Shown here piece after piece: positions 23,966 to 57,851 of a DNA stretch of 64,000 nucleotides. The position numbers and the translations under genes were made by a program. The notes under the pieces were generated by a model. It was not told the origin of the DNA, ran no database searches, and saw nothing but the letters and a program-made list of their open reading frames with translations. The stretch lies in assembly GCA_002269645.1 (NCBI GenBank), contig NIVC01001528.1:1-64000 (forward strand). Direction: 5' to 3'. Source of the DNA: Macrostomum lignano. Taxonomy: Eukaryota. Within the stretch, counting starts at the first letter, position 1, and each line of letters begins with the position of its first letter.

Positions 23966-24719
23966 ATGCAGCGCTCCGTGCACCTGATTGCCCTCCTATC
24001 CGTGCCTCTGGCTCTGCTGTTCCTGGTGGCGATGAGTCAGCCAAGTGTGCTGCATCACGGATACATCGGCTGCTTTGTTGACAGCAACAGCAATAGAGAT
24101 TTGAAAGGCCTGACTGGGTTAAAGACCATTGGTCCTTTCACTGATAAGATTGAGTTGGCCTACTTTTACAATGGATACACCGTCACCATCGAGAGCTGCA
24201 GCAGCCTCTGCGCCCTGGGCAGATTTCGCTACTTCGGTCTGCAGGCAAGCGCCTTCTGCTTCTGCGGCAACAGCTACGGACTGCACGGAGCCGCTTCATC
24301 AGATTCTGAGTGTAACACAAACTGCTATGGAAACAGCAGCCAGATTTGCGGCGGCCACGATAGAAACTCCATTTATGAGAACTTCTATGCGCCCGGTAAG
24401 AAAAATTTCCTGGTCATTTAGCTAAAGATTCCTGCATCTACATTTTCTCAATTTGTGCTGCTGCTCAGAGACCGGCCTCTTCAAGCGCGTGGCCTCAACC
24501 AAGTCGATGCTCACCACCGCGCCCGGACAGCCAGAGAACAGCACCTACTGGAGCCAGGAGGCCACGGGAGTCTTCGAGTGCGCCGCCGCCTGCCACCGCA
24601 GCCCGGACTGCCTCGCCTGCGCCTTCGTGCAGTCCAGCCGGATGTGTCGCCTCCTGAGATTCGCCGCTGTGCCCGGCGAGGTCGCCAGCGAGGCCCAGTG
24701 GGTCTGGGTGAAGCCGTGA
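23966..24719 (+). CDS. Secreted WSC + PAN/apple-like protein, copy 1, 226 aa; join(23966..24395,24469..24719)
   Basis: Hydrophobic signal peptide MQRSVHLIALLSVPLALLFLVAMS. WSC pattern YIGCFVD...TIESCSSLC...RYFGLQ...CFCGN...C..NC.GNSSQICGG..RNSIY. 73-bp phase-1 intron. PAN pattern ECAAACHRSPDCLACAF...MCRL. No transmembrane or GPI tail. Confidence 0.9.
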
Positions 24720-25257
24720 GCCTGTCGGTCAATAAAGCAAGCGGAAGCAGGAAGTACGAGCCAAGTGATATTCAACCTGATATTCGGAACCAAGCTTAAC
24801 TTCTCAAAACAGCTGACATACCGTAGGGGATCAGCAATCTAAGTAAAAAAATACAGAACTGTCCTGGTTTCCACCACGCACTTTTACGCCGAATCCTACG
24901 CGCTAAAAGAGAGCAAATAATCCCCCCCCCACGTGATCGCGACCCAAGCAATTACCGAAGTCGCTAAATTTGAAGGCTTTTATGAAGTCTTAAATGAATT
25001 AATGGCTTCGGAAACTTTCTGGGCCTTTATTGCCGCATTGAAAGGATTAAAAGCTTCTTGGTCAAGAAAATTACTTTCGATTTACATGTAGAAGCACTTT
25101 TAAACTAAAACTAAAGAGCTTTATTCACAGTTTTTGTGAATCATTTTCAAATAAAGGTACGATATTTCATATAAAACATGTACATGTATGTATAGATTTT
25201 CCAGGAATATATTCATTCTTGTTAAAAAAAGTATTTTTATTTTTTTTACTTGGGGCT

Positions 25258-26228
25258 TTAGCACCAGAGGCGCCAGCACCAGAGGCGCCAGCACCAGAGG
25301 CGCCAGCACCAGAGGCGCCAGCACCAGAGGCGCCAGCACCAGAGGCGCCAGCACCAGAGGCGCCAGCACCAGAGGCGCCAGCACCAGAGGCGCCAGCACC
25401 AGAGGCGCCAGCACCAGAGGCGCCAGCACCAGAGGCGCCAGCACCAGAGGCGCCAGCACCAGAGGCGCCAGCACCAGAGGCGCCAGCACCAGAGGCGCCA
25501 GCACCAGAGGCGCCAGCACCAGAGGCGCCAGCACCAGAGGCGCCAGCACCAGAGGCGCCAGCACCAGAGGCGCCAGCACCAGAGGCGCCAGCACCAGAGG
25601 CGCCAGCACCAGAGGCGCCAGCACCAGAGGCGCCAGCACCAGAGGCGCCAGCACCAGAGGCGCCAGCACCAGAGGCGCCAGCACCAAGAGGCGCCAGCAC
25701 CATTGGCGCCAGCACCAGACGCGCCAGCACCAGAGGCGCCAGAAACAAAAGAGGCGCCAGTACCATTGGCGCCAAAACCAAGAGGCGCCAGCACCAGAGG
25801 CGCCAGCACCAGAGGCGCCAGCACCAGAGGCGCCAGCACCAGAGGCGCCAGCACCAGAGGCGCCAGCACCAGAGGCGCCAGCACCAGAGGCGCCAGCACC
25901 AGAGGCGCCAGCACTAGAGGCGCCAGCACCAGAGGCGCCAGCACCAGAGGCGCCAGCACCAGAGGCGCCAGCACCAGAGGCGCCAGCACCAGAGGCGCCA
26001 GCACCAGAGGCGCCAGCACCAGACGCGCCAGCACCAGAGGCGCCAGCACCAGAGGCGCCAGCACCAGTGGCGCCAGCACCAGAGGCGCCAGCACCAGAGG
26101 CGCCAGCACCAAGAGGCGCCAGCACCATTGGCGCCAGCACCAGACGCGCCAGCACCAGAGGCGCCAGAAACAAAAGAGGCGCCAGTACCATTGGCGCCAA
26201 AACCAAGAGGCGCCAGCACCAGAGGCGT
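25258..26228. repeat. 15-bp minisatellite (agcaccagaggcgcc), ~60 copies, with a variant ~110-bp cassette present twice
   Basis: Tandem array; the variant block occurs at ~25681-25790 and ~26106-26215. Confidence 0.96.
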
Positions 26229-26854
26229 CAGTTCAATTGTTTAAATTTTTTTAATGAACAATCAATGAAGCACTCAATTAATCCACTTTGACTTTCAGCA
26301 ACTAGAACCTTGAGAAAACTGATAAATAGCCATAACTTTTTGGGTTTTAAATCATAACTTCAAAAGCGCCAGAGGTCCTTGCGAATCCCGTGAATCTTGT
26401 AAAACAGCCTCCAACAGAGGACGTACGATCGAGTTGAATGTTTTTTGCGACGACTAAAACCGAACTCCAATGAAATTCAAACAGTTAGCGTTGTTCTAAT
26501 CCAGTGTATTCCCGCTATTTCGACATTGTTTGTCACATTGAATGATACTGGATGAATAGACCCCAATCGCATGATTGCAATCCAGCATATGGTTAATAAA
26601 CTTTATGACTTGCAGTCAACCCCCCTCACTAGGGATTTTTAAAAAACACAAAAACTCCCAACCCCCACTTTTACCCGACCTAAGAGTTGGGGAGGATCGA
26701 ATGAAGAGAGTCAAAGGATGCTGCCAGAGCCACTGCTACGCAGAACGGATCAATGATGCGGTGGGCATTTTTTTCACGATTTTAAACTTCCTAGCTTTAG
26801 CGGCTCAGGAATTACAAAGCAACTTCCTTGCCTCGGCTACCATTGTTCTCTCCT

Positions 26855-27274
26855 GAAAGCGCTGCTTTGAATAGCGACAGCTGCCTCAAAGTGCTCTGAA
26901 CTTTTTACCATTGTCCGAAACTCTTTCACTGAATTCACCCGAACCCCAACCGGACGGACTCGAAATGGGGGGAAGGACATGGCGCTGCATGTCAAAGCGA
27001 CATCGGACCCGCAGCCACGCACCCGCAGCCGACAGCTCAGCCGCAGCTATTGCGCGGCGCATCTGAAGGCTGCGTACGGCTGTTCAGTCCAAGGACTGGC
27101 GGGTCGCCACACACACCCTCAATTACCCCAGCTAATGCTGGCACCCATTTTACAGCTGAGTGAACTGAAGCAATGCAGAGAGTTAAGTATCCGCTCAAGG
27201 AAAAATTGCCAAGAATCGAACCCCCGACCTTTGAGTCGCGAGTCCGACGCTCTAACCACTAGGCTACAGTCCCC
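26855..27274 (-). mobile_element. tRNA-derived SINE, family B, near full length
   Basis: Minus-strand head ggggactgtagcctagtggttagagcgtcggactcgcgactcaaaggtcgggggttcgattc (A box TAGCCTAGTGG, B box GGTTCGATTC). Body shared with 43571-43735; tail resembles an L2-type tail (agcactttgagg...aaagcagcgct). Confidence 0.75.
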
Positions 27275-27825: not shown

Positions 27826-28160
27826 CACTTTATTAAGCCACATTGTCGCACAATCGGCGAAAGGCATTGCTGCCCATTCCGCCGACTCCCCTGAGCAGAC
27901 ACACAAGCGCGCGGATACGTACGCAGTCATACATACAGGCACACACTCACACAGGAGTGTACAGCGGCCCTAACTTTATTTATCGTTAGGCATGTACACT
28001 TCACTGCGCCTTGGGGGTTGGGCCTCAAGGGCGTTAATTGCACGAGCAGAGCCAAGCCGAGATTCCAATTTAGCCCGAAATGAATTTGACTGCACTTGGA
28101 ATCGAGCCTGGGCCGCTGGCACATCAGAGCTCCGCGCCAGACCTCTAGGCTACGTCCCCC
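27826..28160 (-). mobile_element. tRNA-derived SINE, family A, copy 2
   Basis: Colinear with 16476-16835; head gggggacgtagcctagagg...ggctcgattcc. Confidence 0.8.
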
Positions 28161-28694: not shown

Positions 28695-29324
<630 letters not shown>

Positions 29325-30544: not shown

Positions 30545-31316
30545 ATGTTCCGCCCCGATCAGGCCCTCCTGCTGCTGCTGGTGCAGGGCTATTGTTACTC
30601 AGGGCTGCTGCTGCCTCCGCAACCGCTGGGCCATCAGTACCTTGGCTGCTACGTTGACGGAGGCAACGGGGACCGGGACCTGGTTGGCCTGAAAGGGGTC
30701 ACTACTTTGGGACCCTACTCATATGACTCAGGAAACCCGGTCTTTGTCCGAGAAGAAAGTCTGACGCTGGAGATGTGCAGAGAAATCTGCTCCTACGGCC
30801 GCTTTCGCTACTTCGGTACCCAGAGCCGCGTTTTCTGCTGCTGCAGCTCGACCTACGGCTCGAAAGGCGTCGCCGCTGCCGCTGACTGCATCTACCCTTG
30901 CAACGGCAACACGTCTCAGGAGTGCGGCGGCGACTCAAGGAACTCCATCTATGAGTCTCTGCATCCACCGAGTGAGTTCTGCGCCAAGAACATTGTGATC
31001 CTCTCAATAAGTTGAACCAGTTTTTATCCTAACAATTTAGACAACTTTTTGAACTCCTTCCTAATTTACAGTTGGACCGAAACTAACGAAAGTTCCCGTT
31101 GCTTCCATGCCGAGCATCGCAGCCTCCACCAGCTCCATCGTTTACCGCAGCGAGACGGCCGGAAGCGTCATCGAGTGCGCGGCCGCCTGCCACCGAAGCC
31201 CGGACTGCCTCGCCTGCGCCTTCGTGCAGTCCAGCCGGATGTGCCGGCTCCTGAGATTCGCCGCTGTGCCCAGCGACATCGCCAGCGAGGGCCAGTGGGT
31301 CTGGGTGAAGCCGTGA
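30545..31316 (+). CDS. Secreted WSC + PAN/apple-like protein, copy 2, 223 aa; join(30545..30971,31072..31316)
   Basis: Signal peptide; YLGCYVDG...LEMCREIC...RYFG...CCCSS...C.YPC.GN..QECGGDSRNSIY; a|gtgag donor and tttacag acceptor give phase 1; PAN exon ends QWVWVKP. Confidence 0.88.
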
Positions 31317-32194
31317 CGAATTTGCAACTACAAAAGCAAATGAGCAAAAGCAACTTCTGGGATGGCGAAATCGAGCAAACAAGCAGAGAACAATTACTTA
31401 ATGTTGCTTTTTTTTGGCAAAGGCTTTTTTAATTAGTAACGTAGACTGCCCTACCGTACGTTAACAATTTTTCTACCTTATCTCCTTATCTTTTGAAAAT
31501 TGTTCCCAAGTGGCTCTTTTACACTTTTTCGCGGCACCCCAAATTGATTGTCGCCATTGTGAAGCAGAATCTGAATTGACAAAGCAAAACCAACAACTAA
31601 ATTCGGTGTTAAACATGTTAATACTGCAATGTAATATGATTTCCACCTGTCTTGACAAAACTTAACCAAGCAGAGCCAATTAGCGAGTTTGCAGTTCTCT
31701 ATCATGAGCATGCTCGTAAAACACCTGTCTAACTGTGCCCGAAGTCAATCAACTGTCAAACGTCCATCGATCCGCTGAGTCCTAAGAAATCTCGCCTACT
31801 ATTGAGTAAGTAGTAAGATACGGTTATGAAGCTACTATTGAGCAGTGTAGTAAAAGTGAAAGTGCAGACTGTCGGTGACGCACTGAAATGCGTCAGAACG
31901 ATGGAAATTTGAAGCAGTACATTTATTTGAAGAAGAGCTGCTTCCTCATTTCTGAGAAGCTGAGAACAACGTAGATTCACACAGGGGGCTTACCATAAAT
32001 ATTAACATCGTTTTCAATTCTTAGAAAAATTGACTTCCATTTTTCCCCAGATGCTGCTTCAATTGGGCTTGGAAGTTTCGCGGATTTTCACCTGCCCAAG
32101 AGAGCACTCAAATTTTATACTCATAGCGACTCTCCGCATTAGCTGTGTAACATCAAAAACAGCTGGTATCCATCTGCACTCCTTGGTAGCAGCC

Positions 32195-32388
32195 TGAGGA
32201 TCTAGATGCTAATTACCTGAGGTTTTAGATGCTGATTGCCTGATGATCTAGATGCTAATTACCTGAGGTTCTAGATGCTAATTACCTGAGGATCTAGATG
32301 CTAATTACCTGAGGATCTGGATGCTAATTACCTGAGGATTTAGATGCTAATTACCTGAGGATCTGGATGCTAATTACCTGAGGATCCA
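32195..32388. repeat. 23-bp minisatellite (tctagatgctaattacctgagga), ~7-8 copies
   Basis: Direct tandem repetition. Confidence 0.88.
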
Positions 32389-33938: not shown

Positions 33939-35170
33939 AAACAGAGTTTTGAGTCGCTGATGAGAGACATTTTAAAAATTCTGAGACTCGCAGAGTTAGG
34001 AGCCTGAGGCAGCTTCATCTTCTAGCTACCAAAGATGGGAGAGCTGCATGACTTGTCACGCATTGCTGTCCTCTGCTTGCTCAGTGAATTCTCAACAAGC
34101 TGGTGCTTGCAGGCTAATCCTCCCACAGCGATTCAGCCAGGAGTAAGAGACGAGACTGATGCAGACAAAGAATTCTATACAATAGATAGCTATGCGAAAG
34201 AGATGTCGCTGGTGCCTGAGTTGACTCAGTTACGTTGGGAAAGACAATCGGCCTGGAGGGGTAGGCTGGATCGATGAATCTTCTGCAGAAGTTCTGCAGC
34301 AGTCTGGTGTTACGAATCAGTGCCGGCGCTGTCAATGCTTCCGCTGCTTTGGAGTTTGAGGCTGACGTGTTGTGCAAGCTGCCCTGCTGTGCATGCATCT
34401 ATTAATGTCTCCGGGTTGAGCAGCTTTGCTTAGCTGTCTCAGCTTTGCTGCAATGCTTTAATCCTCACCTGGCAGCAGAGTGGAACAAAACTCGGTGCTC
34501 TTACCTCTGCTTCTTGACTCGGCTTCCGTTGCCTCGGTCTCGTTACCGATTGACTCCCGATTCGGGCACCTGGGGTTTGGAAATTGCATCGTTCCATTTG
34601 CAACGATAAGATAGTTTAGTGACTTGGTGCTATTCCACTTTCCATTGCTACTGCTTTGTTTTTGTTTGCATTTTCAGTTTTCTTTACTTGAATTCGCGCC
34701 TGACGGCATCCTACGTCAGATAGACTGACTATTTATGCTGTGCAATGGGGCGTGTTTCACGTGACCATCGGGTAGGATTGGCTGTGTTCAGGTAGGTGGA
34801 TTTCCGCGCTAGCACTTGAAGCATTGTCTGTGCCACGGTGAGTAACGGCCGCTGGAGAGGTCGCACGACGACCCGCAAAGCTGTGCAAGGCAAAAAAACT
34901 GCTACAGCTGCAGCTAAACAGATGGCCCCACAGTTTTTATCTATGAAGACCAGGCGGTTCAGGAAATTCCACAAGGCAGACAAGTCGCATGCATGGCTGC
35001 ATGGAAATCAATGTAAAGCTAAGTTTCTTGTGAAAGGCACGAATTCGAATATACTCCGGCTTTCGCTTGCCGCTTTCCGTGTCAATCAAGCGATACAATG
35101 CGAGCTTCCTTTCTGCCTCTCTGCCGCTTGGTCAAGATGGACAAGGGAAGCTAGGTTGGTTGTCTTGCTG

Positions 35171-35184
35171 GTTACCATGGCAAC
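35171..35184. promoter_or_regulatory. RFX X-box (GTTACCATGGCAAC) upstream of WSC-PAN copy 3
   Basis: Exact consensus match, ~285 bp before the ATG. Confidence 0.65.
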
Positions 35185-35467
35185 TTGTCTGAACTGCTTA
35201 CCAGCCTGCGCAGGAGAGTTACAGAGTCACCAAGCCCTGCAAGTCGCAAGCAACCAATGAAATTTCATCCGCGCCTCATCAACTCATGCCATTGTTTCTT
35301 GTGAAAAAGTCCGCATATAATACACATCCATCTGAAAGGCATCTTGGCCTGTCCGTAATCTTGTCAAAGGGTGTCCAGCAGTGAATCCTCATCCTGTAGT
35401 CAGAGTCCAGCAGCGTCAAGCAGCCTTCAGTCTTCATCCAGCTTGCTGTAACCGCCAGTGCGCCAGC

Positions 35468-36077
35468 ATGCAGCGCTCCGTGCACCTGATTGTCCTCCTA
35501 TCCGTGCCTCTGGTCCTGCTGTTCCTGGTGGCGATGAGTCAGCCAAGTGTGCTGCATTACGGATACATCGGCTGCTTTGTTGACAGCAACAGCAACAGAG
35601 ATTTGAAAGGCCTGACTGAATTGAAGACAATTGGGCCTTTCACCGATAAGATAGAGTTGGCCTACTTTTTCAATATGTACACCGTCACCATCGAGAACTG
35701 CAGCAACCTCTGCGCCCTGGGCAGATTTCGCTACTTAGGTCTGCAGGCGCGAGCCTTCTGCTTCTGCGACAACAGCTACGGACTGCACGGAGCCGCTGCG
35801 AATTCTGACTGTCAGGAACTTTGCGTTGGAAACAGCAGCCAGATTTGCGGCGGCTACGATATAAACTCCATTTATGAGAACTTCTATGCGCCCGGTAAGA
35901 ACATTTTCGGGTCTTTTGGCTAACGATTCCTGCATCTAAATTTTTCTGCATTTGTGCTGCTGCTCAGAGACCGGCCTCTTCAAGCGCGTGGCCTCAACCA
36001 AGTCGATGCTCACCACCGCGCCCGGACAGCCAGAGAACAGCACCTACTGGAGCCAGGATGCTAGTGGTCCTTGGTAA
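35468..36077 (+). CDS. WSC-PAN copy 3, C-terminally truncated (WSC only, 178 aa) or pseudogene; join(35468..35894,35968..36077)
   Basis: Exon 1 is intact and highly similar to copy 1. Exon 2 homology breaks at ...tggagccagga| (~36058) and reaches TAA at 36075-36077, before any PAN cysteine. Confidence 0.8.
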
Positions 36078-36535
36078 CTTTCTGTGGCCTCTGGCACAAC
36101 GCTAAGTCAGTCTTAGGAGTCTTGGTGGTAGCAGTGGTCCTAAGGACATGAAATCAAAAAATAGAAACCATTTTTCATAATGGGCACCACTCCAGTGGAT
36201 CCACTTTGTTCTTTTTCTAGTGCAAAGAATATATTTAACAAACTGATTGTCTACTTTCAGTAGCAAAATAAGCGGCAGATGGGTAGAAAATTTTACTATT
36301 GCAATTTTTGTACTTGCTTTATACTTATTTCACATAAGCAGAAGTCTCTTGCCCCAAATGCCAAAGTGTATAGAGGAACAGATTCTGCTGCACAGTTTTT
36401 AGGTCATCATGTAGTTGCACACAACTTCTGTACAGAATGCAAACTGGCAACTTGACTCTTGTTTGAGTAAGCCGTTCACCCATTGGTAGATATACTGTGA
36501 GAATATTCTGCTTTTGTAATCGTTGTATTAATTAT

Positions 36536-36776
36536 AGGCAGGAGTTGTGTGCACCCTGGCGCACTTTAAGCGACATTGTAACACAACCGGCGAGAGGCAT
36601 TTCCACTGCCCATTCCACCGACTCCCCTGAGTAGGCACACAAGCGCGCGAATACGTACGCAGTCATACGCACAGGCACTCACGCAGGAGTGTACAGCAGC
36701 CCTAACTTTATTAATAGTTAGGCATGTACACTTCACCTGTGCCTTGGGGGTTGGCCCTCAAGGGCGTTAATTGCTT
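36536..36776 (-). mobile_element. SINE family A, copy 3 (tRNA head missing)
   Basis: Body colinear with the other copies; ends abruptly at aagggcgttaattgc, next to the retroelement relic. Confidence 0.75.
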
Positions 36777-36779
36777 GAT

Positions 36780-38600
36780 TAAGTTTTTATTTGTCAATAA
36801 CCATGGAGAGTGCACGCGCACTAACAGCCAGACAGCTCAGAAATCAAGGCGCTCACACGGCTTTAGGGTGAGCTCAACGGGAACCAGACTGCTGCCTCCC
36901 TACTTCAAGGTGAGCTCACAGCTTTTCCTGCTGTTGTGCACGAGGCCTTTTTATCTTGCGCAGGTGTAGAGGGCGGTCAGTCGGCCAGAAAGCGCAGCCG
37001 GGCCTACCTGATCCGAGAATTTGTCAAGCCCAACGCCAACCAGTCAACCAAGAGCCTGACCGCCTGGATGGAGAACGGAAACTTGGTGATCAAAAAGCAG
37101 CCGCCAAGCCTAAGCAAAATTTACACTCACCAATGGATCTCTGGCAATGCTCAAATCCTACAACGCCTGAACTGACGACGGCTCGCTCATCTACTTGAGT
37201 GACGACGGATCTGTGAGCACCAGCAAGCTGAGAGGCTACCTGCTGTACTCCCAGAAGATTGGAGAACTCTTGGACGCCAACTACAGCCCAAACTGTGTGT
37301 GCGAGTTTGATGAAGACTAAAGGAAGCTGATGGCCAAGTCGGACTGCAAACCCCCGCAGCTGTACCACCGCCACCTGAACGCTCCACGCAATCTGAAGGT
37401 CACTTTGAACCGACTCGGTATTTTGCAGCCGCAGGCGCCTATCTGCCTGAGCTTCAACTCACCAGCCGGCTCTCAACGGTCCAGCTGCCGGTGCCGGCAC
37501 GCCTGCAAGCTGCCTGGCTGAGGCAAGCCGCATCCCGTCCAACTGCATCATCAGAGCAGCGATGCGGTGGAGGGGTCAAAGAACTAGATTTACTTTATAG
37601 CCACCATGCTTTTATCTCCCAACCGCTCTCATCCCATTGTTTGCATCCCCGATCGCCCCTGCTTGTCATTCCGCCCCGCTTCCAGTCCTTCCGGCTCTTC
37701 GGTCAACGACAGCTATGAGCAGGAGCGGAGTCTGAGGTTCTCCTTCGTGCAGGATCTGCTCCGTCACATCCGGCCCGGCTCGTTTATCAGCAAGGTCGAT
37801 CTGAAGCAGGCCTACCGCTCTGTCGGCATTCACCCGGACGATCAGGCGCTGACGGGTCTCAGCTGGCGTTTCGCGGCTGGCACCGAATCCTCGGTGTTCA
37901 TCGACACCCGGCTGCCATTCGGTGCCCGGGCCTCTTGCGAGATCTTTCACCGCCATTCATCGCCACATGCATAGGCAAGGATACCAAGTTTTTGTCAACC
38001 TGGACGACTGGGTGGTTGCCGGCGACTCGCAGGAAGAAGCTGAATGCACTTACAACTACCTGGTGCAACTCCTGCAAGACCTGGGCTTCACCATCAACTG
38101 GAGCAAGTCCACGGCTGAGCACAGCGGATGGTCTTCCTTGGCGTCCAAATCGACACAATTGACGACGCACTGTCGCTGCCCATGGACAAGGCCGCCAGCA
38201 CCAGGGATTTGCTGAAGGACTGCCTCTCCCGCAACATCGTCAAGCTCAAGCAGCTGGAGAGGCTGGCCGGGAAGCTGTGCTAGTTGGGCCTGATCAACAA
38301 GCTGCTGCGTCTGTTTTGACCTCATCAGCGACAGTCGAGATCTCCGGCTGCCTCAAGAAGGTCACAGTCTGCTGCAATGGTGGCTTCAGGCAGTGGACTC
38401 TGCCACCTACACCGCTTCACCCGCGCTTCCATCAGTTGGTGGCCATCGAGTCCGACAGCAGCTCCGAAGGCCTTCCAGGGCGGTCTCTCTGTGGCCGACA
38501 TCTGCTGCATTGATGACTGGCGCAGTGGCTCCGTCGTCTCCTATTTCTCGGACGATGCAGACTTTGCCGCAGACGCTCTGCTGTCACCTCATTGAAGCCT
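36780..38600 (+). mobile_element. Degenerate DIRS-superfamily (Ngaro-like) retrotransposon: gag-like and RT/RNaseH fragments
   Basis: RT pieces FISKVDLKQAYRSVGIHPDDQALTGLSW...FIDTRLPFGARASCEIF and VNLDDWVV...LLQDLGFTINWSKS. Upstream gag-like pieces (WISGNAQILQRL, YLLYSQKIGELL). Multiple stops and frameshifts; no YR ORF seen. Confidence 0.75.
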
Positions 38601-39222: not shown

Positions 39223-39710
39223 AACAATGCAATGCAAGCAGCACCAGAAATGCAATGCAAGCAGCACCTGCAATTCAATGCAAACAGCACCCACAATGCA
39301 ATGCAAGCAGCACCTGCAATTCAATGCAAACAGCACCCACAATGCAATGCAAGCAGCACCTGCAATTCAATGCAAACAGCACCCACAATGCAATGCAAGC
39401 AGCACCTGCAATGCAATGCAAGCAGCACCCACAATGCAATGCAAGCAGCACCTGCAATTCAATGCAAACAGCACCCACAATGCAATGCAAGCAGCACCTG
39501 CAATGCAATGCAAGCAGCACCCACAATGCAATGCAAGCAGCACCTGCAAGTCAATGCAAGCAGCACCTGCAAGTCAATGCAAGCAGCACCTGCAATTCAA
39601 TGCAAGCAGCACCTGCAATGCAATGCAAGCAGCACCCACAATGCAATGCAAGCAGCACCTGCAATGCAATGCAAGCAGCACCTGCAATGCAATGCACACA
39701 GCTACAATGC
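39223..39710. repeat. 23-bp minisatellite (caatgcaatgcaagcagcacc-tg/ca), ~21 copies
   Basis: Tandem array of alternating variants. Confidence 0.93.
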
Positions 39711-40610
39711 AGCTCTGTGAAAATCCCGCCATCATCACCTGAGCGAGTCTCCTTTATGAGACGCGTGGCACCTGCTCTCCAGGCAATGCCAGGAGAGCTC
39801 TGAGCTGAACAGTTTGAGCTTTGAGTCGCTGATGAGAGACAATTTCAAGAATTCTGAGACACGCAGAGTTAGGAGCCTGTGGCAGCTTCATCTTCCATCA
39901 GAGCTACCAAAGATGGGAAAGCCGCATGACTTACATCTTCTGCTTGCTCATTAAAATTCTCAACAAGCTGGTGCTTGCAGGCTAAGCATCCTACAACGAT
40001 TCAGCTGGGGGGGGGGATTAGAGACGGAACGGATGCATCGATCGATATTCGCTTTCAGTTCAACAGCAGTCTTGTGCCACGCACCAGTGCCAGCGCTTTC
40101 AATGCTTCTGCTGCTTGGCTGATGTGGAGTTTGAAGCGTTGCTTTTCTGCTGTGCATGGCAGGCTTTCCCGCCTGAGCAGCTCTGCTTATCTGTCTCAGC
40201 TTTGTCTTAATCCTTGGCAGCAGAATGGAACAAAACTTCTTGCTCTTGCCCCGCTGTACTTCTTGACTCGGCTTCTGTGGCCTCGGTCGTTTCCGCTTGA
40301 CTCCCGATTCGTACCCTGGGGTTTGGAAATTGCATCGGTATTTTGCAACGATAATACATCAAAGACCACCAGGAACACTTTGTAGTCTAGAAGTCTTTGC
40401 AACAAATTTTTAGTTTGGGAAGCAGGCGTACATTTAGCTAGTTTTAGTGGCTCTGTGCTATCTAACTTTCTCGGTGCTACTGCTTTGTTTTTTGCTACAT
40501 TTTCACTTGTTTTCTTTTACCCGATATCGTGTCTGTCGGCATTCTGACTACATGTATGTATACTATGTACTGTGCATGTTTCATGTGACCATCAGGTTGA
40601 ATTGGATGTT

Positions 40611-41810: not shown

Positions 41811-42421
41811 GTTTTGCCGTCGAGATTTACGAGCGTTGCAATTTAGCATGCTATAGCATCTAAAGCATTGCCTGGGCCGGCTCTGAGCCACGGTGAGTAA
41901 CGGCCTATCGCTCGAGAAATCACAAGACAAATCGCAAAGCTGTGCAAGGCAAAGGAAGATTGTTACAGCTGCATGTACTAGCTAATAACAAACAGATAAT
42001 CCAGCAATTTTTATCAATAGAGATTAAGGACTTTCTGGGAGGATTCAGAAACCGAAGATACCGGCAGCGGCTTTCGCTTGTAGCTTGCAGTGTTAATCAA
42101 GCGAGACAATGCGAGCTTCCTTTTATAATTGTTGTCTCTGTGCCGCTCCGTCAAGATGGACAACGGCAAGTTGAGCTGGTTTTGGTTTGCTGGTGACGAT
42201 GCCAGCCTGCCTCAGAAGAATTATTTTCACCAAGTATCGCAAGTCGCTGCAACCAATGAAATTTCATCTGCGTCGCATACATTCACGCCATTGTTTCTTG
42301 TGGCAAATCGTGCATATACATGTAGGCCACATTTGCCTCAGAGGTATCTTGGCTTGCCTGCAAATCTAGTCAAAGGGTGTCCAGCAGCCTTCAGTCTGGC
42401 TGTAACCGCCGGTGCGCCAGC

Positions 42422-43176
42422 ATGCAGCACTCCGTGCACCTGATTGTCCTCCTATCCGTGCCTCTGGCCCTGCTGTTCCTGGTGGCGATGAGCCAGCCAA
42501 GTGTGCTGCATCACGGATACATCGGCTGCTTTGTTGACAGCAGCAGCAACAGAGATTTGAAAGGCCTGACTGGGTTGAAGACCATTGGTCCTTTCACTGA
42601 TAAGATAGAGTTCGCCTACTTTTTCAATGGATACACCGTCACCATCGAGAGCTGCAGCAGCCTCTGCGCCCTGGGCAGATTTCGCTACTTCGGTCTGCAG
42701 GCGCAAGGCTTCTGCTTCTGCGGCAACAGCTACGGACTGCATGGAGCCGCTTCATCAGATTCTGAGTGTAACAAAAACTGCTATGGAAACAGCAGCCAGA
42801 TTTGCGGCGGCTTCGATAGAAACTCCATTTATGAGAACATCTATGCGCCCGGTAAGAAAAGTTTCCTGGTCATTTAGCTGACGATTCCTGCATCTGCATT
42901 TATCTGCATTTGTGCTGCTGCTCAGAGACCGGCCTCTTCAAGCGCGTGGCCTCAACCAAGTCGATGCTCACCACCGCGGCCGGACAGCCAGAGAACAGCA
43001 CCTACTGGAGCCAGGAGGCCACGGTGGCCTTCGAGTGCCTCGCCGCCTGCCACCGCAGCCCGGACTGCCTCGCCTGCGCCTTCGTGCAGTCCAGCCGGAT
43101 GTGCCACCTCATGAGATTCGCCGCTGTGCCCGGCGAGGTCGCCAGCGAGGCCCAGTGGGTCTGGGTGAAGCCGTGA
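42422..43176 (+). CDS. Secreted WSC + PAN/apple-like protein, copy 4, 226 aa; join(42422..42851,42926..43176)
   Basis: Close paralogue of copy 1; 74-bp phase-1 intron; reading frame intact. Confidence 0.9.
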
Positions 43177-43570
43177 GCCTGTCTGACGACTGATAGTCTA
43201 CCGTGAATAAACAAGCATTAACAGTTACCAGCCCAGAACACGAACCTACAAAAGCTTGTTTGTATAAGTGAACGAGGTTTTGAGACAGGAAAAATTGAAG
43301 CATCAAAAAGAACAGAACCTTTGCGGTCCCAGTTTACCACTGTAAGAACAAAATATTATAATAAATTCGACTATTGAGCTATTTATCGCATTGCATAAAA
43401 GAAAATCGCATTTTATTGTTAGTTACTTTTTCATCCATTTTAGTATCTAAGTAGATATTGATCATGGAAAATTCATTGATGTTGATCAATCAATTTAGTG
43501 TTCAATATTCCTGAATTTGCTAGTGTATAGTCGCCCCCAGCGGCAGCTCTGAGCGGTAGAAACCCACATG

Positions 43571-43735: not shown

Positions 43736-43958
43736 CCATTACGGTCGGTGCAAGAAAAACATATTGATATGAGTTGCCATCTAGATCTCAAATGTCCGCA
43801 GAATCTGCTAACTGGCATCATCTATGATAGACATCACGTGTTTTAGGCTTAGCGACCTTGCTCCCCATCAATCTTCCAACCAGCATTATTGTCATCGCCA
43901 GGGTCAACAGGTGCTCATCATGTGATTCCATTCCTGGGCAAATCAGCTGCCGCATGCT

Positions 43959-44388
43959 GCATGCCTGGGTGAACTCGAACTTGAGTCTGTCAGCTGACAT
44001 GCATGCCTGGGTGAGCTCGAACTTGAGTCTGTCAGCTGACATGCATGCCTGGGTGAGCTCGAAATTGAGTCTGTCAGCTGACATGCATGCCTGGGTGAAC
44101 TCGAACTTGAGTCTGTCAGCTGACATGCATGCCTGGGTGAACTCGAACTTGAGTCTGTCAGCTGACATGCATGCCTGGGTGAACTCGAACTTGAGTCTGT
44201 CAGCTGACATGCATGCCTGGGTGAACTCGAACTTGAGTCTGTCAGCTGACATGCATGCCTGGGTGAACTCGAACTTGAGTCTGTCAGCTGACATGCATGC
44301 CTGGGTGAACTCGAACTTGAGTCTGTCAGCTGACATGCATGCCTGGGTGAACTCGAACTTGAGTCTGTCAGCTGACATGCATGCCTGG
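43959..44388. repeat. 42-bp minisatellite (gcatgcctgggtgaactcgaacttgagtctgtcagctgacat), ~10 copies
   Basis: Near-perfect head-to-tail array with no spacers. Confidence 0.95.
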
Positions 44389-45157
44389 TAAGACAAGTTT
44401 AGAAAGCGTAGAAAAAGCAGGAAAGAAGCTGAAAAGCAGCAATGCTTTTGTTTCAATAGACCATCTTCGTTGCTGATGAGAATCTGCTGCCTTTATTGCT
44501 CCAGCCCTTACTTCTAAATTCACGATTTAGAAGATTTAGGAGACTTGTTGCTGAGAGTTGTGGGGAACACTGTGCTTCCCAGTGACTGAAGCGAGCGATT
44601 CCCTGCGGCGTTGGGAACGTTCTGACAGTCTTGCGACTCTCCGCGGCTTCTCTCAGTCAGTCCTTAGGACTCTTAGCTGTAGTCAGGAAAAAGAAAAAAA
44701 CATTTTTTCTATTATTGACGCCAGTGAATCAACTTTATTCTTCTTCTACAGTAAAGAATACATTTAAAAAACTTAGTAGCTACTTTCAGTAGCAAAATAA
44801 GAGTCAGACGGGGTAGAAACTTTTATTGGTGCAATTTTTGTACTTACAGCATAGTTCACGAAGTGTAACAACCTGCTGTACAGGGGAGATTCTGCTGCAC
44901 AGTTTTGGGGTCATCGTGTGGTTGATGCACACAAATTATGTGCAGAGTGCAATTGTGTCTGAATCTGTTTGAATCAAGCATGCTTTTTACAATCAGTGTT
45001 GAATCAGTTCAGTTACAGTAGTCAACTAAGAACAGGTAAAGAACGCATTTACAAACTACTTTAAGTGCTTAAGTGCTAATTAATTAAGCGCTTTCTTAAC
45101 AGATTTTACAGCTAAGTTGCAAATGTTAAAATTCTGCTGTTGAACTCTTTGTTATAG

Positions 45158-45511
45158 TTAGAGGCAAGGGGCCGTGTGCACCCTGGCGCACTTTAAGCGA
45201 CATAGGCACACAACCGACGAGAGGCATTACTGCCCATTCCGCCGACTCCCCTGAGCAGGCATACAAGCGTGCGGATACGCCCAGGCACACACTCACACAG
45301 GAGTGTACAGCGGCCCTAACTTTATATTATCGTTAGGCATGTACACTTCACTGCGCCTTGGGGGGTTGGCCCTCAAGGCCGTTAATTGCACGAGCAGAGC
45401 CAAGCCGAGATTCCAACTTGGCCCAAGATGAATGTGACTGCACTTGGAATCGAGCCTGGTCCGCTGGCACGCGAGAGCGGCCGTGATAGACCACTTAGGC
45501 TACGGTCCCCC
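45158..45511 (-). mobile_element. tRNA-derived SINE, family A, copy 4
   Basis: Head gggggaccgtagcctaagtggtctatcacggccgctctcgcgtgccagcggaccaggctcgattcc; A box TAGCCTAAGTGG. Resembles tRNA-Glu(CTC) by eye. Confidence 0.8.
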
Positions 45512-46387: not shown

Positions 46388-47227
46388 AGCTATTGCACTC
46401 GATTGGTGCCTTAGCTGCAGGCATTTGCACTCCATTGGTGCCTAAGCTACAGGCTATTGCACTCGATTGGTGTCTAAGCTGCAGGCTATTGCACTCCATT
46501 GGTGTCTAAGCTGCAGACTATTGCACTCCATTGGTGCCTAAGCTACAGGCTATTGCACTCGATTGGTGTCTAAGCTGCAGGCTATTGCACTCCATTGGTG
46601 TCTAAGCTGCAGACTATTGCACTCGATTGGTGTCTAAGCTACAGACTATTGCACTCCATTGGTGTCTAAGCTACAGACTATTGCACTCCATTGGTGTCTA
46701 AGCTGCAGACTATTGCACTCCATTGGTGTCTAAGCTGCAGACTATTGCACTCCATTGGTGTCTAAGCTACAGACTATTGCACTCCATTGGTGTCTAAGCT
46801 GCAGACTATTGCACTCCATTGGTGTCTAAGCTGCAGACTATTGCACTCCATTGGTGTCTAAGCTGCAGACTATTGCACTCCATTGGTGTCTAAGCTGCAG
46901 ACTATTGCACTCCATTGGTGTCTAAGCTGCAGACTATTGCACTCCATTGGTGTCTAAGCTGCAGACTATTGCACTCCATTGGTGTCTAAGCTGCAGACTA
47001 TTGCACTCCATTGGTGTCTAAGCTGCAGACTATTGCACTCCATTGGTGTCTAAGCTGCAGACTATTGCACTCCATTGGTGCCTAAGCTGCAGACTATTGC
47101 ACTCCATTGGTGCCTAAGCTGCAGACTATTGCACTCCATTGGTGTCTAAGCTGCAGACTATTGCACTCCATTGGTGCCTAAGCTGCAGGCAGGCTATTGC
47201 AATCCATTGGTGCCTAAGCTGCAGGCT
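46388..47227. repeat. 32-bp minisatellite (ctattgcactccattggtgtctaagctgcaga), ~26 copies, abutting the copy-5 start codon
   Basis: Period 32 (actatt at 46741 and 46805); the last unit runs into gcaggctATG. Confidence 0.95.
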
Positions 47228-50200
47228 ATGCAGCTGACGCACCAGAAACTGCTGGCAGCTCTGCTGTCACTTGGCAGCCTGCTGGTATCGGCACAGCTGG
47301 CAGTCAAGTCCGTCAGCTACATCGGCTGCTTCGTTGACCTCAACGACAGCTCCAGGGACTTGACGGGTCTGTCGGGCATCACCCGGATTGGCCCCTTCAG
47401 CCAGATCAACCCCGCGGGGAGCCACCTGTTCCGCTTTGACATGACCATCGGCAGGTGCGTCAGGCTGTGCTCGCTCGGCCGGTTCAGGTACCTCGGCCTG
47501 CAGGCCACCGGCTTCTGCAGCTGCAGTCGGAGCCACGGCTCCCACGGGCCGGCCTCCGAGACCGAATGCAACCGGAACTGCACGGGCCATGCCAGACAAA
47601 TCTGCGGCGGTCTGCTCAGGAATTCGATTTACGAACTGGCTTATGAAGACGGTGAGCGAGCGATCGACTCTGGATTGTTGAGCACAATTAAAAGCGAATC
47701 TTGAACAGCTAATTTCTACCACTAAGGATTAAATTGCTTGCTCCCAGGGACAGTTGGTTCGGAAGACTCTACAATCATGGGCAGCTGTTTAGATTGAAGC
47801 CCCATTGAAACGCACTAAATTTCCTACACTTCAAATTTGTGCTCAGCGAACAATGCTAGGAATTCCCATTGTGAAACAAACACGTCCTGCGACTTTATAA
47901 ATCAATGTTAAATCAAGTGTAAACTTCAAACTGTAAACTATAAAATAAATAGAGTTTAGTATTTGTCAGTGAGAGTCAAAATAAACAATCAATATGGATA
48001 AAATTGTTTTTGACAATCTAAATGATAATTTGGACACTCAACATGAGACACGCATACAGCGAGCTGCAACAACTTGCTGGCAAACTCGTATTGGCCATGG
48101 AGTCCGTGGACAATCTAATCGATGAAAAGCCGTTCTAAATGAGAATTCGGACATTCAAAATAATAAAATGCCATTCTAAGTGATAATTTAAGCTGCCAAA
48201 TGTTTTCAGCAATTTTTTGGATTTTTAACTGATTAACGGAACAAGAACTCAACAAAAAGTCAATCTAGAGTGATTAAAAGGCAGAAGAACTAAAAACAAA
48301 GGATGGCAGCATTGGCAGCTGCAGTACCCTTGCTGCCTCTTTGATGGAGTGCCCCGCGTTAATGGCATCGATCAGGCGACGGCGATCTGCTTCACTTGTT
48401 TGAGGCGGCATTCTGCTGCTGATGTGTGTACGTTTTGCTGCTGCTGCCGGTGCGCGCGATGAGAGAAATTCTCATTTAGAATGGTTGGTTATTCGTAAGT
48501 GAGACTTTAGGATAATAGTCCGGCTCATGAGTGCGCGCAGCGCACGAGTGAGCATAGGACTATTATCCTAAAGTCTCACTTACGAATAGCCGCATTGTCG
48601 AATTTCAGTGGGGCCATAGACAAAAAGGGCATCGAAAGGAGAGAGGGGTTACCGAGGAGAGAGAGACATAAAGACTGAGGTGGTTTACTGGAGTTTGGGC
48701 CATAGACAACGAGGTTGCAAACAGGCTGGGGGTTAAGAGGGTGGAAAGGAAGGAGATGTGGAGAGAAAGAGAGAATAAAACGTAAATAGCTACATTCGCT
48801 TGGCCATGGAGAACCAGACGTCATATCCGATCAACTGGGGCAATCTGCCTGTCGAAAGTTTAGCCAACGTATCTAGCAGCGAACTCAATTGGATCTCAAG
48901 ACTTTCCACATCTCAGAAGGACATGAAGGATAACGAAGACTTTTTGAACTTCTTGCACTTTCTTGAGACCTGGAATCGGCTGGGCATTCGATGAGCGAGA
49001 TCATGGCTATCACGGGTCAAAAGTCCGAGAGCACGGTCCGGCGCTACCTGGCAGTTAAACGGGACAAGTCCCTGCAACAATGCAGCGATGCAGTGTCGCG
49101 TGCGTTGAACATGGGACAAAGCGCCGCGACCCACGGTCAAGTAACAATGCCTGCTGACATCAGCATCCAAAGTTCCATCGTGCAAGAAGCAGTGAGCGTG
49201 TCTGATGGTCGTCAGATGAACGGTCGGAATATCTTTATTATGAACAACTGCACTTTCAACAATTGCAATCTGTAATGGTCTTCGGCACTATGACAATTGC
49301 GCCATATTGATACTGCACAATTAACTTTCCATAGCGCTAATCTTTTGTTGTTGGTGCTTGCTGTTTTGTTCTAAAAATAGGTGTCCATTATCCCGAGTTT
49401 GAAATCATCATCCTGAAGTTTAAGTGAAAAAATAAATAAATGTGCTCACGGTTTAACCATAGACGATTGCATTATCCTAAAGGCTGATTTTTGACAATGG
49501 CTTTTTATCGATTAGATTGTCCACAGACTCTGTCCACGGAGCGAGCTGCCGCAGCCATAGAGCAGCCATAGAGTGTTTCTCGTTTGAATGTCCAAATTAT
49601 CATCTAGATTGTTAAAAACAATGGTGCACCACCCAGAAACTCCTCATATGGGCATCGAATAGAGCAAAACTCGTGCCATGCGCATGTTACGAAACTTTGA
49701 ATTGACCCAGGTGCCTTCCACATCTGGTGACTTTGGTTCAGACCACAGACTAATGTCACATCAAAGCCACGTCAGCCATATCTTCTCTTGGGCTCAGATC
49801 ATAGACTATACTCAAGAAGAACTCTTAGAATTGTTTGCTGAGCCAAGGACCCGCCCTCGGCCTGATAAAAACGCATCCTCGGACTTTCTTTTCCATAGAA
49901 CGATTTATTATCGCGTGTAATACTATACTCATGGTTCAAATCATGGGTTTCAACCATAGACAGTCTCCGCAGACCGCGAAATCGCCACGAAAAGACTGCT
50001 GAAATTACAGTCATTGTCTTTTAATTCTGACAGCGGGCCCCAATTCTGCAGTCGGGCATCTGTGGCGATTTCAGTTCGTATCGTATTTTTGGTAGCCGTT
50101 CTCCACTTCAATTGCAATCCTCTTGGTTACAGAGCAGAATTTAAAAATCCAAGCCATAATAGACTCGAAGCAGCTGCGATTTGCATTTGTCGATCTGTCT

Positions 50201-50796
50201 CACAATGCATTCCTTCGGAGCTTATGTTTTTAACTCTTCTTTTTCTTCTCTTCTCTTGTTTCTCTTATTTACAGTCTCGAAAATTTGTCTATGGTCTGAA
50301 TGTACAGAGAGTACAAAGAATGGACAGACGCTCTGCCCCCACAGCCCCGCTAGCAGCGGTAAATATCTATGGTAAAATATATGGAACCTCCCATTTCTGC
50401 CCACACAGAGGGGTAACATGGGCATGAACAAAAAGTTCTTCAAGTAAACTACTGTATTTCTTAGGATGCATATTGCTGAGAAATTACTTGCAGTTTTATG
50501 GTATCCCGAATTGTCGTCAACAATAAAACAAAGCCTCTGGTATTTCAGCAACTGGCGGCTTCAAGACGCTGCCAGCAGCATCGCAGCCTCTGGTGTCTGA
50601 CCCAGGATTCAGTGTCAGCACTCACTGGAGTCTGCCCGCCTCCGTGTCGCTCGAGTGCCTCGCCGCCTGCCACCGCAGCTCGGACTGCCTCGCCTGCGCC
50701 TTCGTGCAGTCCAGCCGGATGTGCCGCCTCATGAGATTCGCCGCTGTGCCCAGCGAGGTCGCCAGCGAGGCCCAGTGGGTCTGGGTGAAGCTGTGA
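47228..50796 (+). CDS. Secreted WSC + PAN/apple-like protein, copy 5, 223 aa; join(47228..47651,50549..50796)
   Basis: Signal peptide MQLTHQKLLAALLSLGSLLVSA; WSC cysteines intact. g|gtgagc donor and tatttcag acceptor are phase-1 compatible and open the frame into the PAN exon; the intron is 2897 bp. Confidence 0.78.
48005..49620 (+). mobile_element. Crypton-like (DUF3504 tyrosine recombinase) relic within nested inverted repeats, inside the copy-5 intron
   Basis: SAGHSMSEIMAITGQKSESTVRRY (48976-) matches the YR box-II pattern (GH changed to GQ, Tyr kept) and ends in NNCTFNNCNL. Outer IR arms 48005-48134 / 49496-49620; inner IR 48130-48147 / 48467-48484. Confidence 0.65.
48490..48588. repeat. 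99-bp near-perfect hairpin (32-bp perfect arms)
   Basis: tattcgtaagtgagactttaggataatagtcc (48490-48521) is the exact reverse complement of 48557-48588. The loop also pairs (gctca/tgagc, gtgcgc/gcgcac). Confidence 0.95.
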
Positions 50797-51552: not shown

Positions 51553-52650
51553 ATGTTGCCTCTCTTGCTGCTCCTAGTACCAGCAGCCCTGAGCACAATG
51601 GTGAATGCTCAAGCAACAATTAGCCACTCAAACTATATCGGTTGCTATGTGGACGGGGACGACACCAGCCGAGACTTGACCGGCATGGCGCCGTTTTCCA
51701 CCTTCGCGTCCACGAGCGTCGGGTCCGGCATTCTGTACAGGCCGGACATGACCGTGTCCATGTGCGGCAGGATTTGCGCTCTTGGCAGATTTCGCTACTT
51801 CGCTCTACAGGCCACCGCCTTTTGCAGCTGCGATTCAACCTACGGCAGCCACGGATCCGCAGCCGAAGCCGACTGCTACCAGGACTGCGCTGGCAACGCG
51901 TCGGAGAAGTGTGGTGGACCCTACAGGAATTCCATCTACGAGAATGTCTACCAGCCTGGTACGAGCCCGCGTCTAGGAGGCTTTAAAGCCTTCTTTAAAG
52001 AAAACTAAAGCCTTAGCTGTTCTTTGTTGCGTAGCCACCTGAATAGCTAAAATCCCTCTGGGAAATCTTGAGAGGTCTAACTATGGCTGAAGAACTAAGT
52101 TCCATGAATATATTCAGAACAGAGTCGTGAACAAGGACTACATGTACTAAAGTAGAAGGACGCAACACTCGAAGTTCAGAAGCTCAGTGTCGTCTATGTT
52201 AGCCAAAGCTTAGGGACGACTGGTCATGTACTCTGGAGGCAGTGCAAGACTGCGAAATACCGGTACGAGCACAGAAGAGACTCTAGATGATGCGCGAACG
52301 TATCGTATTTGTAGAAAGAGCCTTTTTATTTAAGACTAGAACGCCATGGTTAAAAGGTCCTCACTCCCCTACCCCGCAATTCTTCACTTACAGTCGGTTC
52401 AAAGTTCACCAAGGCCGCCTCGAGCTCCAACAGCATCGTGAAAAACGCGGGCCAGTCAATCCTGACCCACTGGAACGACACCTCGCCATCAGCCAACAGC
52501 CAAATTAAATGTGCGGCCACCTGCCAGCGCAACCCAACCTGCCTCGGCTACACCTTCGGGCAGTCCAGCCGAATCTGCTGGTTGACGACCTTCGCCTTGG
52601 CGCCCCCGATCGTCGCTGGCGAGTCGGCCTGGATCTGGATGAGGAACTGA
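51553..52650 (+). CDS. Secreted WSC + PAN/apple-like protein, copy 6 (most divergent PAN), 220 aa; join(51553..51958,52394..52650)
   Basis: Signal peptide; YIGCYVDGDD...VSMCGRIC...RYFALQ...CSCDS...CYQDCAGN..EKCGG..RNSIY; 435-bp phase-1 intron; KCAATCQRNPTCLGYTF...ICWL. Confidence 0.88.
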
Positions 52651-56485: not shown

Positions 56486-57096
56486 ATGCTAATTAATGCT
56501 CTCACAAACTACTGAAAGTAAGACTTAAGAACGGACCACGCCAAGGAGGGCTTTGGGTCTCCCTCGCTCGTTTTTCTAAGCAGAAGTCACGGCATCACAG
56601 TGAAAACCATGGGTAGAGCCGTAATGTCCTTTGTCCACAGCCGGTGCAGAAGGCGCTGCTTCTGACTCTGCGGGCCGACTCCGGCACCCTGTTTGACGCT
56701 GTTTATTATTTACGAAGCAAACGAAAAGAGCAACCACATGTAGAGACTTGTTTGTCACCAAATTTCTCAATATTACTCGTATATTTTTCAATGATTTTCA
56801 ATGCAAAAATATTGAATAATCTTTGCTGGAAATCCATCTTGGCGTTGATGATGCAACAGAAAATAACTCTGATCAGAGAAAGTCACAGCAGAGCAAGCAA
56901 ACCGGAAATCAGCCGCCAGTAAGTTAATCAAAGCTCAAAGCTAATCATTTCCAGCATCAAACTTCAGTTTAGAAGTGCCTTTATTAACTTTAACAGAACA
57001 GAGAATTAAGAGGAGTAGGCTAAAAAATACAAAGATTTTAATCAAGGAGGGGCTCTGCTGTTACGGACTGCTCAAGTTCAACTCATCGCTCACTGA

Positions 57097-57851
57097 TCAC
57101 AGCTTCACCCAGACCCACTGGGCCTCACTGGCGACCTCGCTGGGCACAGCGGCGAATCTCATGAGGCGGCACATCCGGCTGGACTGCACGAAGGCGCAGG
57201 CGAGGCAGTCCGGGCTGCGGTGGCAGGCGGCGAGGCACTCGAAGGCCACCGTGGCCTCCTGGCTCCAGTAAACCCTCCGGACCAGCATTTCGGGCACGGT
57301 GATCAGAGCGATTTTGGTTGAAGCCATCGACTTGTAGGACCCATTGGCTGGAGTTTAACGAATAAATAAACCTTATTTTAAACAAAAACATTGTCAACAG
57401 CCACATCGCTGAACTCACCTGTTGTGTAGATGTTTTCATGCAAACTGATTTTTTTGGTCCCACCGCAGGACTGTGAGTTGTTTCCGGCGCACTTCTTAAC
57501 ATCACAGCCTCCACCGTTGCACGGCGGAATACGCTGCACAGTCGACCCGCAGACGCACTCGCTCCCATCGCGCAGACCGAAGTAACGAAATCTGCCCATG
57601 GCGCAGGCGCCACTGCAGAACTCGACGGTCATGTCGTCTCTGTCAAGGACGCCTCTAACAAAATCAACATCATAGGCACCAAGAATTGCCACACCCGTCA
57701 GCCCGTTCAAGTCCCCATGCGAGCTGTTACCGGAAGTGTCCAGGCAGCAGTCCACGTGGTTAATGAATTGCACAATGGGCTGCCCGAACACCGAGGCAGC
57801 TGTCAAGAGTCCAACAGCCGAAGTGAGCGAGATGAAGGCCGATGGCGACAT
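57097..57851 (-). CDS. Secreted WSC + PAN/apple-like protein, copy 7 (divergent WSC), 227 aa; complement(join(57097..57347,57419..57851))
   Basis: Signal peptide MSPSAFISLTSAVGLLTAASVFG; VEFCSGAC...RYFGL...CVCGS...C..KKCAGNNSQSCGG; 71-bp phase-1 intron; PAN exon near-identical to the other copies in its 3' half. Confidence 0.87.

Follow-up and report, generated by a model that had tools for sequence, protein, structure and literature searches.

We analysed a window of 64 kb from the flatworm Macrostomum lignano (contig NIVC01001528.1 of assembly GCA_002269645.1, positions 1 to 64,000). It holds exactly eight two-exon genes, here called c1 to c8, that form a tandem and inverted cluster and encode proteins of mostly ~220–230 amino acids (Table 1). 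Our subject is the cysteine-rich tail encoded at the 3′ end of their second exon. The introns of all eight genes are of the GT-AG type, in phase 1 and at the identical position, and the open frames comprise 179–230 codons. A tblastn search of the window with all eight proteins yielded no additional exon or fragment. The models of c7 and c8 agree residue for residue with the UniProt entries A0A1I8IGA5 and A0A1I8IGY7, which lends independent support to the gene models, and the c4 protein is 100% identical to the UniRef entry A0A1I8IHA2 of the same species.

Table 1 The eight genes of the cluster, with window positions of exons, tails and converted tracts, and BLAST matches to the 144-bp tail of c5.
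Gene	Position	Strand	Exon 1	Intron	Exon 2	Tail or tract	BLAST match to c5 tail (identity)	Remarks
c1	23966–24719	+	23966–24395	73 bp	24469–24719	homogenised tail 24576–24719	24576–24719 (95.1%)	
c2	30545–31316	+	30545–30971	100 bp	31072–31316	converted tract ~31171–31316	31173–31316 (92.4%)	divergent head and linker
c3	35468–36077	+	35468–35894		35968–36077			c1-group head, without tail
c4	42422–43176	+	42422–42851	74 bp	42926–43176	tail 43033–43176	43033–43176 (97.2%)	
c5	47228–50796	+	47228–47651	2897 bp	50549–50796	converted tract 50651–50796	50653–50796 (query)	divergent head and linker
c6	51553–52650	+	51553–51958	435 bp	52394–52650	unconverted tail 52507–52650	52516–52642 (71%)	
c7	57097–57851	-	57851–57419	71 bp	57347–57097	converted tract 57270–57097 (174 bp)	57240–57097 (98.6%)	
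c8	59616–60381	-	60381–59949	73 bp	59875–59616	tail 59770–59627	59768–59627 (97.2%)	

Two of the genes have structural peculiarities. The intron of c5 is unusually long compared with the 71–435 bp of the other copies; the same splice is used in P0166, a prediction from a parallel copy of the locus described below, and tblastn detected no alternative exon 2 nearby. A minisatellite with a period of 32 bp (26 copies, 46390–47229) abuts and overlaps the ATG of c5 (47228). In c8, the stop codon is changed from TGA to TAC, which adds the three codons Y-T-E (59616–59629, minus strand). The same KLYTE ending as in c8 is found in the database protein P0171, there on a differently mosaic head.

Each protein begins with a hydrophobic, signal-peptide-like N-terminus, followed by a WSC domain encoded in exon 1, then by an unconserved linker and a cysteine-rich PAN/apple-like tail, both encoded in exon 2; only c3 is without the tail. 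The WSC head matches Pfam PF01822 with 38–54 bits at a cut-off of 27.8 (E-values of 1.6e-14 to 1.4e-9) and the Kremen1 WSC profile at 1.4e-12, and Foldseek relates its predicted fold to Wsc1 and Kremen (~4e-5). For the tail, four proteins score 21.6–23.3 bits against PAN_1 (PF00024; cut-off 21.4) and c5 stays below with 18.3 bits. Profile matches to apple-domain and HGF N structures are weak (E-values of 1.4e-3 to 9e-3), and Foldseek matches of the tail to PAN appear only at E-values of at least 0.67, the tail being modelled with a predicted local distance difference test score (pLDDT) of 65–82. No domain other than WSC and PAN was detected in the c1–c8 proteins, nor any transmembrane or signalling part or further hydrophobic segment.

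Four cysteines are conserved in the tails of the whole family. The homogenised tails of c1, c2, c4, c5, c7 and c8 have five (…DCLAC…), with the extra one at tail codon 15 (for example 50695–50697), as does the tail of P0017, a database protein from the sister lineage of c2; c6 and the more distant family tails have four. We speculate that the odd fifth cysteine could form an intermolecular disulfide or other covalent pairing. The family itself was delineated by an exhaustive profile search, with database proteins and the exon translations of the window genes as query. This recovered numerous other small WSC + PAN-like proteins; all those for which the source was checked belong to M. lignano. 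A protein word search with the 47-residue tail alone gave no candidates.

By their heads, the eight genes fall into five deep lineages, the c1/c3/c4/c8 group (in the following called the c1 group), c2, c5, c6 and c7, with the c7 head being the most divergent of all. Members of the c1 group are related over ~1 kb, starting ~300 bp before the ATG and ending at the stop codon, with 90–95% identity in exon 1 and a synonymous divergence (dS) of 0.08–0.15. Between lineages, exon 1 shows nucleotide identities of 0.44–0.57, third-position identities of 0.33–0.49 and dS values from 1.2 to saturated or not computable. The last 47 codons of the six copies with a homogenised tail differ sharply from this: in the same comparisons between lineages, nucleotide identity is 0.92–0.99, third-position identity 0.89–1.00 and dS 0.00–0.14. 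For c2 against the c1 group, for instance, dS is 1.2–1.5 in exon 1 and 0.09–0.14 in the tail. Among codons that specify the same amino acid, 35–51% differ synonymously before the tail compared with 0–10% within it (Fisher p from 3e-3 to 8e-9).

A BLAST search of the window with the tail of c5 returned exactly seven copies including the query, which are graded in similarity, with c2 at 92–94% to the others and c5 and c7 at 97–98.6%. The relationships of heads and tails are incongruent, as judged from identities without bootstrapped trees: exon 1 clusters c1, c3, c4 and c8 and leaves the other copies deeply separated, whereas in the tail c5 and c7 are the closest pair (98.6%), the six copies are tightly grouped and c6 lies outside. 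GC content at third codon positions (GC3) is 0.92–0.96 in the converted tails compared with 0.65–0.83 in exon 1, an enrichment consistent with GC-biased conversion, though nonspecific. Non-synonymous divergence (dN) about equals dS among the converted tails (dN/dS ~1), so that changes there are as often non-synonymous as synonymous. Within the c1 group, exon 1 has a dN/dS of 0.5–1.0, as would be expected if selection on the head were relaxed or diversifying.

The edges of the tract are well defined. In nucleotide comparisons of exon 2 and its flanks, the intron, linker and 3′ flank cannot be aligned from one lineage to another, in contrast to the nearly invariant tail. MaxChi placed breakpoints at 31171 in c2 (31171–31182), 50651 in c5 and 57270 in c7, each with a permutation p ≤ 0.001. 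A GENECONV-style test for concordant runs gave p ≤ 0.0002 for the pairs c4–c7, c8–c5, c8–c7, c2–c7 and c5–c7; this exact-run test is weak where mismatches are scattered (c1–c2, p = 0.04), and MaxChi and the codon-based Fisher tests were used as well. At the other side, identity ends 0–10 nt after the stop codon in every tailed copy. The homology within the c1 group likewise ends no more than 10 nt past the stop in c1, c4 and c8 (homologous units of the group at 23690–24726, 35077–36061, 42087–43183 and 59627–60748), and even these three genes have unrelated and very short 3′ untranslated regions (UTRs).

With 174 bp, the tract of c7 is longer than those of c5 and c2 (~146 bp). It carries 33 nt of the c1-group linker (YWSQEATVAF), a region that is otherwise unconserved, and is 97.7% identical to c4 over the 174 bp, which identifies a c1-group gene as the donor. 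Two copies depart from the common pattern. The tail of c6 has 65–71% nucleotide and ~47% amino-acid identity to the others, with ~33% of its nucleotides differing, a dS of ~0.5 and only a weak MaxChi breakpoint; we used it as an internal yardstick for an unhomogenised tail. In c3, homology to c4 stops at 36061 (corresponding to 43019) and resumes at 36189 (corresponding to 44718), and the frame closes after …SQDASGPW with six foreign codons. This gap indicates that a deletion of ~1.7 kb removed the c3 tail. Its breakpoint lies 14 nt inside the position at which the c7 tract starts, which leaves 19 nt between it and the tail. Near the beginning of the tail, three independent breakpoints thus fall within 33 bp, namely the start of the c7 tract, the c3 deletion and the starts of the c5 and c2 tracts. 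Conversion that starts close to the 3′ end of the gene would fit both the extension of all tracts to the stop codon and this clustering.

An initial annotation of this window, made from the sequence without database searches, had described four such tracts, and all four are present at its coordinates and read as described. It had contrasted the different heads of c2, c5 and c7 with a tail that is nearly identical even at third codon positions, with which the dS values and codon tests agree, and had described identity as switching on abruptly inside exon 2 and off at the stop codon, as the MaxChi breakpoints and the limit of 10 nt past the stop bear out. Its view that c6 has escaped is borne out by the diverged tail of that copy. 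The shared tract itself stands, but its length is 144–174 bp rather than the ~135 bp given. The range of 24575–57250 covers the tract set apart from the c8 tail (59627–59770), which belongs to it and falls outside, and the set of tailed copies has to be corrected for c3, which is without any tail. Synonymous sites as diverged as those of exon 1 had been named as the outcome that would speak against gene conversion; this is clearly not what we found (dS of 0–0.14 compared with at least 1.2).

The best explanation of this pattern, to which we assign a probability of about 80%, is interlocus gene conversion that acted recurrently and only on the 3′ tail of exon 2. The five head lineages are old, with synonymous sites of exon 1 saturated. 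According to this model, the last 144–174 bp of the coding sequence were overwritten several times by non-reciprocal copying between copies; c6 was never converted, or not recently, and c3 lost the substrate by its deletion. The edges would lie where homology fails, on the 5′ side in the fast-evolving, indel-rich linker and on the 3′ side in the unrelated and very short 3′ UTR. With the tail now the sole usable homology among the lineages, later exchanges would stay within it, and the tract would be self-sustaining. The initial annotation had also proposed recurrent conversion, and the near-zero dS confined to the tract, the diverged flanks, the differing 5′ breakpoints, the mosaic tail and the incongruence of head and tail all support it.

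Part of this evidence would equally be expected if a c1-group tail had been pasted just once into each of c2, c5 and c7, through either conversion or microhomology-mediated template switching, with simple divergence thereafter. The graded divergence of the tails and the discrete breakpoints in three recipients speak for such one-off replacements, as does homology outside the tract that is too low for classical recombination. We regard them as unlikely, however, on three grounds. First, the 144-bp tail contains six parsimony-informative sites that form seven four-gamete-incompatible pairs, corresponding to a minimum number of recombination events (Rm) of 2. Second, two fused predictions (P0166 and P0174; accessions A0A1I8FTE6 and A0A1I8IFZ0) derive from a parallel copy of the cluster, whose legible parts agree with the window in gene order (upstream gene–c1–minisatellite, and c4–c5–c6). 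At the protein level, its tails differ from their counterparts at the very codons that vary among paralogues, in four gene types: at codon 27 (L/M) in those of the c1, c4, c5 and c8 type and at codon 34 (G/S) in c4. Third, P0017, which is 50% identical to c2 before the tail, matches the tail consensus at 11 of the first 19 but at 24 of the last 28 residues, the pattern expected if its tract is shorter but likewise extends to the 3′ end. Together, the incompatible sites, the differences between the parallel clusters and P0017 point to more exchanges than one per recipient. In addition, informative-site partitions interleave along the entire 1-kb unit of the c1 group, which is thus mosaic throughout, indicating that conversion is active in the cluster generally.

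An error of assembly or short-read polishing, by which reads of one copy were used to correct others, is very improbable. Draft assemblies of M. lignano are repeat-rich and redundant and the tract has about the length of a short read, which would make such an error conceivable, but most copies carry private substitutions (T72 in c1, A74 in c4, T28 in c5, T114 in c7, T6 in c8 and several in c2), and polishing cannot lift an identity of ~55% to 97%. Moreover, the breakpoints differ among copies, the tract stays in frame with the upstream part of exon 2, and the parallel cluster is present in the protein set with the same architecture and different tail alleles.

Still less credible is an origin without any copying, by purifying selection on the protein combined with extreme codon bias or by a function at the nucleotide level, such as RNA structure or a small-RNA target. 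The high tail GC3 of all copies (0.89–0.96 including c6) does restrict codon choice, and c6 also shows fewer synonymous differences in its tail (21–33%) than in its head (51–57%); yet c6, with the same codon bias, differs in 33% of its nucleotides, the converted tails have a dN/dS of ~1, and in c7 the near-identity continues for 33 nt into the otherwise unconserved linker. Other pairs of the family with 33–55% identity in the head have tails of 21–47%, so the tail is not intrinsically slow-evolving. We rejected a constraint by RNA structure because the tail folds no better than its shuffled versions (z = +0.86). Of the further candidates considered, unequal crossover or chimeric duplication is ruled out by the unshared 3′ flank, the boundaries on both sides of the tract likewise arguing against crossover; cDNA-mediated conversion, considered since the tracts reach the 3′ end, by the unshared 3′ UTRs; and a mobile cassette or transposon by the restriction of the tail to the 3′ ends of these genes and by its in-frame homology to the diverged tails of c6 and other family members.

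Several points weigh against recurrent conversion and should be kept in view. In all copies, including the young c1, c4 and c8, the 3′ boundary coincides with the stop codon, which loss of homology explains by inference only. Nor does the model account for the first transfer, which may have taken place between tails of only ~70% identity. Of the incompatible tail sites, positions 24, 100 and 140 are CpG transitions and possibly reflect recurrent mutation, and the tail GC3 of c6 is 0.89 as well, so that GC enrichment is not confined to the converted copies. The parallel cluster may be allelic, may be a homeologue left by the recent genome duplication or may stem from a duplication of its own. 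Comparisons beyond the window were made at the protein level and within M. lignano, and all protein comparators stem from one redundant draft annotation of this species, while the identity of the tails is known from the assembled sequence alone.

The cluster is embedded in repetitive DNA. Besides the array at the c5 start codon, eight further minisatellite arrays lie among the copies (25260–26231, 28772–29293, 32193–32386, 39225–39696, 40610–41809, 43958–44388, 58763–58897 and 62027–62903). These eight have periods of 9–42 bp and up to 120 copies, and more arrays are found at 4.8–9.4 kb and 17.8–20.4 kb. The nine arrays in the cluster suggest a recombination-prone region. Between c3 and c4 lies a decayed retroelement with two adjacent, out-of-frame open reading frames (ORFs; 37606–38215, plus strand), whose match to RVT_1 is below threshold. 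A dispersed repeat of ~330 bp with 84–90% identity is present at four sites, of which three lie downstream of c1, c3 and c4 and one outside the cluster (16474–16835, 27833–28160, 36502–36774 and 45128–45511). Upstream of c1, an ORF at 21474–22325 (plus strand) encodes a protein with an acidic tail, …EGEFEFVEEGDEE, that has no Pfam match. Its sequence also lies upstream of the c1 counterpart in A0A1I8FTE6, which marks it as a genuine neighbour gene that the parallel cluster has retained as well.

Outside the window, a second WSC + PAN-like subfamily of M. lignano (P0007, P0009, P0063 and P0105) forms long tandem arrays, with fused predictions of 1074–2673 amino acids. In the pairs P0083–P0086 and P0068–P0086, the tail is more similar than the head. 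Judging from these protein sequences, tail-biased homogenisation may also occur elsewhere in the WSC + PAN-like family.

From their domains, the proteins of the cluster are most likely secreted lectin-like binders. The initial annotation had gone further and likened the arrangement to diversified immune receptors, with a constant effector or assembly tail and a diversifying, ligand-binding head. Our results do not bear this out: the proteins are small and secreted, each of their two domains is a binding module, the heads represent old germline paralogues of an ordinary kind, and no membrane anchor or signalling part was detected. This leaves the analogy without measured support. Nor does the idea of selection for a constant tail fare better, as other tails of the family evolve at least as fast as their heads and the tail dN/dS is ~1. 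With tail differences as often non-synonymous as synonymous, selection for constancy finds no support, and the uniform tail may have arisen neutrally as a by-product of conversion or may have been selected, for example through a common partner in binding or oligomerisation.

The closest functional lead comes from reproduction. Among 76 prostate-limited transcripts of M. lignano, which are candidate seminal-fluid proteins, many have WSC hits and similar lengths (PMC5977470 Table S1; Weber et al. 2018). Several candidates are described as WSCD2-like, including Mlig-pro46, which affects sperm competitive ability (PMC6953679). By analogy, the cluster might belong to this WSC-rich prostate or seminal-fluid set, which we take as a lead only. 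The primer pairs of 18 published candidates studied by RNA interference (RNAi) or in situ hybridisation had no match in the window at up to three mismatches, and c1–c8 are thus not among these 18.

A doubtful extension of the conversion model is that the uniform tail was selected. All heads would then dock to, or co-assemble through, one partner, possibly via the fifth cysteine, and conversion initiated near the stop codon would spread tail variants among secreted lectins, the WSC heads of which diversify through sexual conflict (seminal fluid) or another arms race. If true, this would be a germline system of constant and variable modules kept in register by conversion. If the proteins are seminal-fluid components, the contrast between head and tail would also provide a testable handle on which part meets the tissues of the mating partner and which a conserved partner.

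Interlocus conversion that affects a single domain or part of a gene is a familiar phenomenon in tandem paralogues, and its mechanism is textbook knowledge. Theory on conversion versus divergence of duplicates is said to have been worked out by Teshima and Innan, HMA4 in Arabidopsis halleri is reportedly an example of interlocus conversion in tandem paralogues, and tandem arrays of Trypanosoma brucei are reported as an example of partial conversion. In our literature search, we found no description of domain-limited conversion for Macrostomum or for this WSC + PAN family. The present cluster therefore offers a clean, small and well-delimited natural case in a flatworm. Both transgenesis and RNAi are available in M. 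lignano, whose genome has undergone a recent duplication and contains many minisatellites. In practice, including the tail will lead to wrong trees, orthology calls and dN/dS estimates for this WSC family.

With known cases of interlocus conversion, the cluster shares the clustering of paralogues, a tract of low dS within old sequence, boundaries on both sides, varying breakpoints and variants common to several paralogues. It is unlike the usual cases in that the tract spans only ~145–175 bp, covers one small C-terminal domain and always terminates at the stop codon, and in that it links four head lineages which are elsewhere unalignable at the DNA level. As for the proteins, the head resembles WSC domains such as those of Kremen1 and yeast Wsc1 by sequence and predicted fold, and the tail weakly resembles apple domains, for which the HGF N domain and the apicomplexan microneme apple lectins SML-2 and MIC4 are the points of reference. 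The two-domain, secreted WSC + PAN architecture of ~220 amino acids was found in M. lignano only, among the small full-length profile matches whose source was looked up.

Two further systems invite comparison. The repeats of the abalone protein VERL are a case of concerted evolution in a reproductive protein, and together with the WSC-containing seminal-fluid candidates of M. lignano they resemble the proteins described here in being secreted, fast-evolving and lineage-specific, with one part homogenised and another diverging. The seminal-fluid candidates are limited to the prostate, whereas c1–c8 are known here from their sequence and had no primer match among the 18. In the paired receptors Siglec-5/14 and Siglec-11/16, and in paired immune receptors of similar kind, the ligand-binding head is homogenised while the signalling tail differs. 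As in our cluster, domain-limited conversion between neighbouring paralogues keeps one module similar, but the polarity is reversed, and membrane receptors there contrast with small secreted proteins here.

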